Assembly (NCBI GenBank): GCA_025603075.1
Contig: MU626281.1
Coordinates: 62,001 to 126,000 of the forward strand
DNA from: Neoconidiobolus thromboides FSU 785
Lineage: Eukaryota > Fungi > Entomophthoromycota
Length of the DNA stretch: 64,000 nucleotides
Direction of reading: 5' to 3'
A program made the position numbers and the translations under genes. Below the pieces are notes generated by a model, which saw only the letters and a list, made by a program, of their open reading frames with translations, did no database searches and was not told the origin of the DNA. Shown in pieces: positions 54,201 to 56,587 of the stretch. The first letter of the stretch is position 1. Each line of letters starts with the position of its first letter.

Positions 54201-54801
54201 ATTTAACACAAGATGAATGGGGAGATATTAATGTAGTTGCATGTACCTTAAAACAATATCTAAGAGATCTACCAGAACCTATAGCTACTTACGAACTGTA
54301 TGATAGTTTTATTAGTGCTGTTAGTAAGTATTTTTTTATTTCAATATTAATTTAAAAGTAAGGTATTAATAATGAATTTAGCTGTTGAAGATTATGATGA
54401 GCGCTTATTTGCAATTAAAGATGTGTTACCAAAATTACCAGAACAAAATTACATCTTTTTAAAAACATTAATTGAACATTTGGAACAGTAAGTTTTGATT
54501 AAATTTAATATGTAAACAATAACTTAATTATTCGTTATTTCCTCTTAGTGTCACCGATTTTGAAGAAACAAATCATATGTATGCAACTAATTTAGCTATT
54601 GTATTTGGTCCCACTATCTTTCGACCACCACCAAGTGAGTCCAGCTTTGCTTTATCTATGGCTAATTTAGGTCATCAACAAAATTTAGTTAAAAATTTAA
54701 TATTACAATACCATTGGTTATTTGATGTGGAGGCAGAAGTGGAAGAAAGCCATGATGATACAATGATTACCATTACAGAACCAATGGAAGGGGAACATTA
54801 A
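48295..54801 (+). CDS. BEM2: Large PH-RasGEF-PH-RhoGAP signalling protein (Bem2-like, ~2000 aa, multi-exon)
   Basis: PH (KEGYLNKK..RSWKLYYVTL), RasGEF-N (SGTVDALI), RasGEF (ELAQQL..RAAILNQWI), second PH (KRDFVIRI..DMDEWV), RhoGAP (LPLVVKKCIAEVEKRGLDEVGIYRVPGS..NHMYATNLAIVFGPT). First intron 51503-51575. Confidence 0.78.
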
Positions 54802-55320
54802 GGATATAATGGAATAAACAGCATTGAGTATGTTATTGATTATTTGAGGATTTAATAAGATATTTGGCATTGAAAAAGAAGGATTGGATGTACGATGGAT
54901 TGGGAATAAGGACGAGAATGATTGATTGATTGAATGGTCAATAATCAATTTTATATTTTTTTATTTTTTTATAGTATATATATTAACGATAAATAATCTA
55001 ATTTAAATTTCTTTATTAATAAATTTTTAATATCTTTTTAATGTATTCTTTTTATTCTTGATTTTTTTAATAGGTTATTATTCTTTCTGATAACGTTTAA
55101 AGTATTAAATATTTAAATAATTAAGCTGGATTTCTCAAATCCTTACTAATGGGATCTTAATTTAAGAATCAACCATTGATTGGCTCTCTCCGATTTGTAA
55201 GAAAATTTTTTTCTCAAAATTTTTATAAATTTGAAAGTTTCATTATCATAGAAAATCACTTTTTGAATCGAATTTGTAAGTAAACTATTAACTACTTTAA
55301 TAAAAAAATTTCATTAAAAT

Positions 55321-55407
55321 CCCAATGATGATCCAACAACATACCGGTTTTGATATTTTTTATAAAAATAAATGATGGACCAACTATCTCTAAGAAGCCC
55401 TGAGTTC
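55321..55407 (+). ncRNA. Box C/D snoRNA, SNORD61(U61)-like guide
   Basis: Box C ATGATGA 55325-55331, D' TTGA 55350-55353, C' ATGATGG 55372-55378, box D CTGA 55400-55403; guide CTCTAAGAAG is antisense to conserved 18S CUUCUUAGAG. Confidence 0.75.
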
Positions 55408-55561
55408 TTTTAAATGTTAACAAAACAATGATCTAGTGTCACTTATTAATCTTCATTTCTTTAGTTTTTCCACATATATCAATGATTGTACAAAAAATCA
55501 TTTATATTCGGTCTATCAGTAAAAACTAATAGGTAAGTGGTTTTTTTATCTGATCTATGAT

Positions 55562-55665
55562 AACAATAGCATGATGAAATAAAATTTTTAATTTAATCTG
55601 TCAATCCGCTGAAAACGCCCAGGTTGCTGGAGTTTATTGACGAGTATAATGATTCTGAAATTGTT
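55562..55665 (+). ncRNA. Box C/D snoRNA, SNORD110-like guide
   Basis: Box C ATGATGA 55571-55577, D' CTGA 55609-55612 preceded by AATCTGTCAATCC (antisense to 18S GGAUUGACAGAUU), box D CTGA 55655-55658, terminal stem AACAAT/ATTGTT. Confidence 0.8.
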
Positions 55666-55971
55666 TTATTACTCTTATTTTGATTTTATGTAAGCATCTT
55701 ATTAACCTGCTTGTTTTTTTATAGATACCCTTGTCTTACCTTATGTACTATATATTTGTAAATTATGAAATAAAATAAACCTTAATTAATATACTCTTTT
55801 TATTTGTCCCAATTTTTTAAATAAAGGCACCTGTTTGAATTTAAATAACTTAATTTACCTTAGATTTCTATCAATATCTAAAACTAGAAACTTCAAAAAA
55901 ATAAAGTCAAATATTAAATTTTCAAATAACTGCCATTTATTTATACTAACAATTCAAAAAAAATTATTTTT

Positions 55972-56587
55972 TCATTCCATGGCTTCTTCTTTAACTTCTT
56001 CTTTTAATTCTTCATCAGCTCCACGGATATATAATACATTATTACACCTAATAATTAAAATAAAATTATTAATACACATTCCGAGATAAAAAATTCAACT
56101 TTTTACCTTATCAATACTTCCCCAACTTGAGCACCTATTCCATCTTCAAATTCTTCAGCTGAGTTTAACTATAAAAATTCAAATATTAATAGGTAATAAA
56201 AATAAAAAAATAAAAATAAAATTAACAATAAAAAACAAGTAGAAACAATAACCATGTAGATAAATCAATTATTACTAATAATGCTTACTTGTAAATTCAT
56301 ATAAGAATCAACCGAAGTTAAAAAACCTTTGTATTCTAAACCCCACTTGAGTTTGACTACTACGGCTTTTCCAGTTAAATTTTGTAAAAAGGGTTTGGGA
56401 TTGACGGGGATTAACTAATAAATAGAGAAATGAGATTAGCATTTGTTGTTTTGTGAGTGGATTTTTCAATGAGATTGATAGCTTGGTTATTTGAAATTTG
56501 AAGTTGTGGTTTTTTAGTGTTGAGTTTTGAAAACGATTTTGCTAAAACCGTGAATATGCGGTATATAATTATACTTACACTTGACAT
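55972..56587 (-). CDS. SNRPF: Small nuclear ribonucleoprotein SmF, 4 exons
   Basis: [68 protein letters not shown]. Confidence 0.92.

Follow-up and report, generated by a model that had tools for sequence, protein, structure and literature searches.

The 64 kb window examined here, which is the whole stretch of DNA analysed (C24:62001-126000 of the Neoconidiobolus thromboides FSU 785 assembly; 24.6 Mb, G+C 26%), contains a locus flanked by two protein genes, a Bem2-like gene upstream and SmF downstream, that is present as a single copy in the assembly. We propose with good confidence that RNA polymerase II transcribes this locus as a short gene that encodes no protein and whose purpose would be the delivery of two small nucleolar RNAs (snoRNAs) of the box C/D class. 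An original prediction for this DNA had described a spliced non-coding host carrying one snoRNA per intron, and this description is now supported by guides anchored at their boxes, by splice and branch signals proper to the species, by exons poor in open reading frames (ORFs) and by an architecture that recurs in the genome, all of which can be read from the DNA.

The two box C/D units and their predicted targets

Guide complementarity was judged on three complete eukaryotic ribosomal DNA (rDNA) units taken from metagenomes, L033, L004 and L019, which come from unidentified species and were delimited with Rfam. A partial 18S gene on the IMG/VR contig L002 served as an extra reference. The 18S and 28S lengths of these references differ from those of human, and the numbering of the human sites Um1442 and Um1288 used below rests on published work (PMC3511168, PMC8817022, PMC2780460). 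In passing, we observed at the end of L002, a "viral" contig of 4543 bp, an incomplete eukaryotic 18S gene, namely its 3' part, which carries an unusual insertion (L002:3632-4543); the contig is probably misclassified or chimeric. The large subunit (LSU) pattern gave no match in the viral contigs.

When both strands of the 64 kb were searched with a snoscan-style screen, only two pairs of boxes C and D showed anchored complementarity of 10 bp or more to all three rDNAs. The two units reach 15 and 11 bp, against a maximum of 8 bp in the background and of 7 bp in the reversed controls. Each of them presents a stretch of at least 10 nucleotides (nt) antisense to the reference rRNA, located 1-3 nt before box D or D', with the target nucleotide at position 5. 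The original prediction had placed one complete box C/D unit in each intron, and we indeed found a single box C and a single box D in each, the second unit having in addition a D' box. It had also suggested a verification by snoscan and Infernal (Rfam); the snoscan-style screen recovers both units, while Rfam leaves both of them under its threshold; at the gathering threshold, Rfam reports only a tRNA in the window. Altogether, both box C/D units look real by these sequence features.

The first unit, snoRNA 1, is of the U61/SNORD61 type and occupies about 55320-55408 on the plus strand (ends approximate), within intron 1. It comprises box C ATGATGA (55325-55331), a D'-like UUGA (55350-55353), a C'-like UGAUGG (55373-55378), the antisense element (55387-55398) and box D CTGA (55400-55403), with a C-to-D span of 79 nt, inside the 70-120 nt range taken for these boxes. 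From guide position 2-3 onwards, the D guide forms 11-12 bp with the 18S segment CUUCUUAGAGG in the three reference rDNAs, and its position 5 lies opposite the second U of CUU in this segment. The predicted target is thus the uridine of 18S that corresponds to human Um1442, a site guided in human by U61/SNORD61 (PMC11550049) and in Dictyostelium by CD1 (PMC8817022). It corresponds to Arabidopsis Um1381, guided by AtU61, and to Dictyostelium Um1456, and has no equivalent in budding yeast (PMC3511168; PMC8817022). The table of Neurospora snoRNAs gives no U61-type fungal member (PMC2780460).

The antisense core CUCUAAGAAG-NN-CUGA of snoRNA 1 is shared with the Rfam consensus sequences of snoR01, DdR1 and SNORD61, and the same D-box guide is found in human U61, Arabidopsis U61 and Dictyostelium DdR1/CD1. 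These RNAs differ from snoRNA 1 at the two positions beside box D, which are CC in snoRNA 1 and UU in the group. The matches to snoR01 and DdR1 fall outside the U61/SNORD61 clan CL00067 and involve the same guide. Judged by this guide, snoRNA 1 is the putative functional equivalent of U61/SNORD61; membership of the sequence family is not established.

The alignment of snoRNA 1 with DdR1 is full-length, D' region included. In this region (55332-55353), the U25-type D' guide of Dictyostelium DdR1, ACAGACCUG-au-CUGA, has its aligned counterpart in ACAUACCGGUU and the UUGA after it. Two mismatches to 18S are present, and no conserved, correctly anchored target was found for the D' region in the reference rDNAs. 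Since a separate snoRNA of the U25/snR56 type exists on another contig (C125, see below), the D' region is probably the relic, now dead, of a U25-type double guide.

The second unit, snoRNA 2, belongs to the SNORD110/HBII-55/snoR14/Nc CD44 type and extends over about 55566-55663 on the plus strand (ends approximate), within intron 2. Box C ATGATGA (55571-55577), the antisense element (55593-55607), box D' CTGA (55609-55612), a C'-like UGACGA (55638-55643) and box D CTGA (55655-55658) follow one another, and the C-to-D span, 88 nt, is again inside the 70-120 nt range. A terminal stem of 6 bp, AACAAU/AUUGUU, is seen in both the minimum free energy (MFE) and the centroid folds. The guide upstream of D' forms 15-16 bp, 14 of them Watson-Crick, with the 18S segment GGAUUGACAGAUUGA in the three reference rDNAs and in L002. 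Its position 5 is opposite the first U of GGAUUGACAGAUUGA, at position 1230-1234 in the two reference 18S of usual length, so that the predicted target is the 18S uridine equivalent to human Um1288 (first U of GGAUUGACAG), which is guided in human by HBII-55/SNORD110 (PMC11550049). The D region has no conserved, correctly anchored rRNA target in the reference rDNAs.

For this site also, Arabidopsis has an equivalent, Um1232 (AtsnoR14), and budding yeast has none (PMC3511168). In Neurospora crassa, the intronic CD44 directs methylation of 18S-Um1227 by a 15 bp D' guide and is the homologue of Schizosaccharomyces pombe snR82, Arabidopsis snoR14 and HBII-55 (PMC2780460 Table 1). Like CD44 (15/0 in that table), snoRNA 2 carries its guide upstream of D' and pairs over 15 bp with 18S, and it shares the element UCUGUCAAUCC-N-CUGA with the Rfam consensus of snoR14. 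By its guide, snoRNA 2 resembles the SNORD110/snoR14/snR82/CD44 group (clan CL00076), in which Um1288, Neurospora Um1227 and Arabidopsis Um1232 are the same site. The D guide of CD44 has a predicted target at 26S-Cm776, whereas that of snoRNA 2 is without a conserved one. An assignment of snoRNA 2 to snR55/U33 was considered and dropped, the Neurospora table and the tables of methylation sites pointing to the SNORD110 type.

Candidate exon-intron structure and upstream module

Each snoRNA lies in its own candidate intron with canonical splice signals, as in UHG-like hosts. Exon 1 (55230-55275, plus strand as is the whole unit; 5' end approximate, between about 55190 and 55265) ends at the donor GTAAGT at 55276. 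Intron 1 (55276-55464, 189 nt) presents the branch motif TTAAT at 55446-55450 and the acceptor TTTAG. Exon 2 (55465-55532, 68 nt) closes in TAG before the second GTAAGT, matching the donor consensus. Intron 2 (55533-55724, 192 nt) has the branch motif TTAAC at 55702-55706 and the acceptor TATAG, and exon 3 runs from 55725 to about 55800 (3' end approximate), with overlapping AATAAA signals at 55769-55779. The original prediction had given the donors at 55276 and 55533, a TTAAT...TTAG acceptor at 55464, a TTAAC...ATAG acceptor at 55724 and a middle exon of 68 nt, and every one of these elements was recovered at its place. By its sequence signals, the unit would be spliced at 55275/55465 and 55532/55725.

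Usual introns in the window are 50-75 nt long, with TTAAT, CTAAT or TTAAC about 15-25 nt ahead of the AG. The donor, branch and acceptor of both candidate introns are thus the species' own intron signals, in introns about three times the usual length. The earlier estimate of about 190 nt, 3-4 times most introns, was roughly right; snoRNA-free introns of 117-240 nt also exist, for instance in SmF. The distance from donor to box C is 49 nt in intron 1 and 38 nt in intron 2; box D ends 61 and 66 nt before the 3' splice site, respectively, and about 46 and 47 nt before the presumed branch A. GTAAGT occurs in just 41 copies in the 64 kb, both strands counted. Among random intervals of 75-95 nt in the window, 0.28% are preceded at 30-60 nt by a donor and followed at 45-85 nt by a branch motif and YAG, which corresponds to a chance expectation of about 8e-6 for paired splice signals at both units.

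The exons were then considered singly for coding capacity. No ATG is found within 55185-55275, i.e. in exon 1 and just upstream; exon 2 has a longest ATG ORF of 15 codons and exon 3 one of 11, each with its stop inside the same exon. No ORF of more than 15 codons was found in any exon in this exon-by-exon check, and the exons are in this respect without protein-coding capacity, as are those of UHG-like hosts.

Within the 260 nt ahead of the first donor, several promoter-like elements are grouped on the plus strand. The TGATTGG that the original prediction had noticed near 55177 is present at 55177-55183; its core ATTGG (55179-55183), a reverse CCAAT box at -97 from the first donor, is a possible promoter element. 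It is followed by two RRPE-like elements, AAAATTTTTTTC at 55202 (-74) and AAAATTTTT at 55216 (-60), which together cover 55202-55224 and represent a putative ribosome-biogenesis promoter motif, and by TATAAA at 55224-55229 (-52), a possible TATA box. Taken singly, CCAAT, TATAAA and AAAATTTT are none of them above chance frequency, CCAAT/ATTGG for example having 149 copies in the 64 kb. The longer AAAATTTTTT is rare, at 3 copies in the 64 kb, on either strand, and stands out, as does the composite that follows.

The composite AAAATTTTTT-N30-200-GTAAGT-N28-45-RTGATGA was found four times in the genome (on C12, C24, C30 and C125) and not once in the reversed control. The sites are C12:166373-166613, C30:22312-22459, C125:27940-28159 and, in the window, 55202-55331, with CCAAT nearby at each. 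At the three other snoRNA hosts with the composite, CCAAT stands within about 10-35 nt of AAAATTTTTT, and because of this recurrence the CCAAT box near 55177 gains weight. A block of GCAAAATTTTTTC and then ACCAATTAAAAGCTTT is common to C12 and C125, and the C125 unit is preceded by GCAAAATTTTTTC, two CCAAT boxes and TATAAA. The latter hexamer stands at -54 in this U25-type host and at -63 in the C63 unit described below; it is common in AT-rich DNA, and its recurrence at these two loci is only suggestive. The AAAATTTTTT motif is not in the upstream region of the snoRNA unit on C157. These data support the module as a candidate dedicated promoter with an RRPE-like ribosome-biogenesis element.

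This module bears directly on whether the locus is a gene of its own. The upstream neighbour is a giant RhoGAP/Bem2-like gene on the plus strand, and the two introns could lie in a long spliced 3' untranslated region (3' UTR) of its mRNA, which would make the host protein-coding. The common strand is in keeping with such an arrangement, as is the distance of only 475 nt between the TAA stop of its last ORF (54799-54801) and the first donor. Between 54820 and 55130, however, there are AATAAA signals and a very AT-rich stretch with T runs, and the AAAATTTTTT/CCAAT/TATAAA module stands 50-100 nt ahead of the first donor, the composite being found also at three other snoRNA-intron units and not in controls. 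A module common to three other hosts argues for an own transcription unit and not for the 3' UTR of the upstream gene, and we regard this origin as unlikely.

Recurrence of the architecture and proposed processing route

Genome-wide, GTAAGT followed after 28-45 nt by RTGATGA occurs 78 times, compared to 45 in the reversed control, and tandem pairs of this pattern are found at four loci, on C12, C24 (the present locus), C63 and C157. Together with the C125 unit, these loci give a comparison set of 11 snoRNA introns at five loci, read from sequence. The donor lies 34-49 nt from box C in these introns, apart from one at 63 nt; at the four loci outside the window, the distance is 34-40 nt in 8 of the 9 candidate introns and 63 nt in the remaining one. 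All 11 introns have 60-67 nt between box D and the 3' splice site.

One of these units is a two-intron, apparently non-coding host on the minus strand (L120:1300-2080, which is G000:C12 about 165.8-166.6 kb), with a middle exon of about 86 nt and the same spacing as the present locus. A snoRNA whose D' guide would pair over 10 bp with 18S near position 389 sits in its intron 1; its intron 2 holds U14, whose guide matches 18S near position 417 over 14 bp. The U25/snR56-type snoRNA, with a 9 bp D' guide to 18S ACAGGUCUG, is in a single-intron unit on the minus strand whose flanks look non-coding (L122:1400-1660, G000:C125 about 27.85-28.16 kb). Two near-identical box C/D units of 84 nt occupy tandem introns of 186 and 188 nt on the minus strand of C63 (L124, G000:C63:39700-41000); no rRNA target of at least 9 bp was found for this pair in the snoscan-style screen. 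The pair may have arisen by a recent tandem duplication of the intron-plus-snoRNA module, and possibly is orphan or guides a non-rRNA target. The snoRNAs of three tandem introns (172, 169 and 209 nt) on the plus strand of C157 (L125, G000:C157:16800-17900) present candidate guides of 9 bp, whose targets in reference numbering would be near 125 and near 370 in 18S and near 2535 in 28S. A further pattern match, at C139 (L123), is without box C and was dismissed.

The fixed spacing between box D and the 3' splice site fits splicing-coupled assembly of small nucleolar ribonucleoproteins (snoRNPs), which predicts such a spacing. It also bears on a processing route in which the snoRNAs are real and are released by endonuclease and exonucleases from an independent or dicistronic precursor, the splice-like signals being incidental. 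Many snoRNAs of budding yeast and plants are made in this way (PMC2780460), but both units of the present locus have a perfect GTAAGT, a species-typical branch motif and YAG, a combination with the chance expectation of about 8e-6 given above, and a distance of 60-67 nt in 11 of 11 introns is sensible only if splicing matters. We consider release without splicing to be improbable, slightly more so than the 3' UTR origin. That boxes and guides match merely by chance, in intergenic DNA rich in AT and with nothing functional, agrees with the absence of an Rfam match at the gathering threshold and with folding energies not better than those of shuffles, but is hardly credible for a guide of 14 Watson-Crick bp anchored at position 2 before CUGA on a universally conserved 18S segment, for an 11 bp match of snoRNA 1 found also in the U61-type family consensus, for a background of at most 8 bp over 128 kb of searched strand and for two units of identical architecture.

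Several points weigh against the reading of the locus as a dedicated snoRNA host. The species' own 18S and 28S rDNA was not detected in the 24.6 Mb assembly with the Rfam small subunit (SSU) and LSU models or with four universal rRNA patterns, and it is because of this absence that the pairing was judged on borrowed rRNA. The Rfam scores of snoRNA 1 are far under gathering, with 29.7 bits for snoR01 (gathering 55), 25.3 for DdR1 (70) and 23.4 for SNORD61 (43), and snoRNA 2 has 15.9 bits with snoR14, for which gathering is 40. The outer stem of snoRNA 1 is weak and made of A/U, an offset 6 bp UUAAAA/UUUUAA that is unused in the MFE fold. Neither snoRNA folds better than shuffled sequence, which is usual for box C/D RNAs. 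The promoter motif was chosen after the loci had been inspected, so that its statistics are indicative only; RRPE itself is a motif that was known beforehand. Finally, the nearest relative, Entomophthora muscae, is too distant for a comparison of synteny and splice-site conservation. The 631 amino acid VTC4 exon of the window matches the VTC4 protein of N. thromboides FSU 785 at 100% identity, and its next best matches are E. muscae at 64% and Basidiobolus at 53-54%; since the nearest relatives are only about 64% identical in a conserved protein, conserved microsynteny is unlikely.

With the locus read as a dedicated non-coding host, the primary transcript would start just 3' of the promoter region formed by AAAATTTTTT (RRPE-like), CCAAT and TATAAA near 55180-55230, would be spliced at the two pairs of junctions and would be polyadenylated near 55790-55810. 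Each snoRNA lies about 46-47 nt before the branch point, so that its boxes C and D would be bound by snoRNP proteins while splicing proceeds. The lariat, once debranched, would be degraded by exonucleases as far as the protected snoRNP, leaving RNAs of about 88 and 97 nt; the three joined exons, an RNA of probably no more than about 150-250 nt, would be a by-product. snoRNA 1 would then direct 2'-O-methylation at the Um1442-equivalent and snoRNA 2 at the Um1288-equivalent.

Genomic setting and comparison with known systems

The upstream RhoGAP/Bem2-like gene encodes a protein of about 2100 amino acids as a whole, one of its ORFs having 736; a word search with this ORF returned no match, probably on account of the length filter. 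Downstream, SmF is on the minus strand and was read as four exons, from the ATG at 56587 to the stop at 55972-55974, so that exon 3 of the host unit and the 3' end of SmF converge. Just three codons of SmF precede its first intron (56415-56578, minus strand), which at 164 nt is longer than usual in this genome and in which we saw no snoRNA boxes.

The locus adds to the genome one non-coding gene and two probable rRNA methylation guides, the public gene calls being, as far as seen, proteins. It suggests that two 18S methylations common to animals and plants, and absent in budding yeast, are kept in Entomophthoromycotina. It also provides a rule of search for further snoRNAs and their hosts in this AT-rich fungal genome and related ones, namely GTAAGT, about 35-50 nt, box C...box D, 60-67 nt and YAG, often behind AAAATTTTTT and CCAAT.

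A wider view joins these elements, and we offer it tentatively, as a possibility that we would not yet favour. The locus would belong to a class of dedicated non-coding hosts that extends over the genome of this early-diverging fungus and has a common RRPE-like/CCAAT module and a strict rule of 60-67 nt from box D to the 3' splice site. In snoRNA 1, Fungi would have their first recorded guide of the U61 type, and its decayed D' would be a relic of an ancestral double guide that is intact in Dictyostelium CD1/DdR1. If true, vertebrate-style splicing-coupled snoRNP assembly and the co-regulation of non-coding hosts with ribosome biogenesis would have been in place early in fungal evolution. What is known of the making of snoRNAs is unchanged by the locus, and the host arrangement itself is already known, as UHG-like hosts, from Neurospora and animals; the locus adds one more case.

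The nearest known systems come from Neurospora crassa, whose UHG-like hosts (clusters I-V; Liu et al. 2009, PMC2780460), non-coding and with one snoRNA per intron, have been confirmed by RT-PCR (reverse transcription PCR) and include cluster V, with a snR190-type snoRNA and U14. These fungal hosts have in common with the present unit several exons, one box C/D snoRNA per intron, short ORFs and canonical splice sites around each snoRNA. The distance from donor to snoRNA is also comparable, Neurospora snoRNAs lying 41-60 nt from the 5' splice site (PMC2780460), and the N. thromboides U14 locus on C12 mirrors cluster V, which is co-transcribed according to RT-PCR (PMC2780460). The pair of a U61-type and a SNORD110-type snoRNA is in contrast not among the Neurospora clusters, where CD44 is listed simply as intronic, and the lineage of N. 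thromboides (Entomophthoromycotina) is a different one.

The vertebrate hosts (UHG, GAS5, SNHG) resemble the proposed unit in having one snoRNA per intron, a non-coding spliced RNA and a fixed distance from snoRNA to branch point, 46-47 nt here; for this distance, Hirose and Steitz (2001) reportedly found an optimum of about 50 nt in mammalian cells. At about 0.6 kb, with three very short exons, the N. thromboides unit is far smaller than these hosts; it has no sequence relation to them and presents an RRPE-like and CCAAT module instead of their 5'TOP (5' terminal oligopyrimidine) start. With the polycistronic clusters of Saccharomyces cerevisiae and plants, it shares several snoRNAs in one dedicated non-coding precursor; there, the snoRNAs are released by endonuclease without splicing, whereas here each snoRNA has its own splice signals at fixed spacing.

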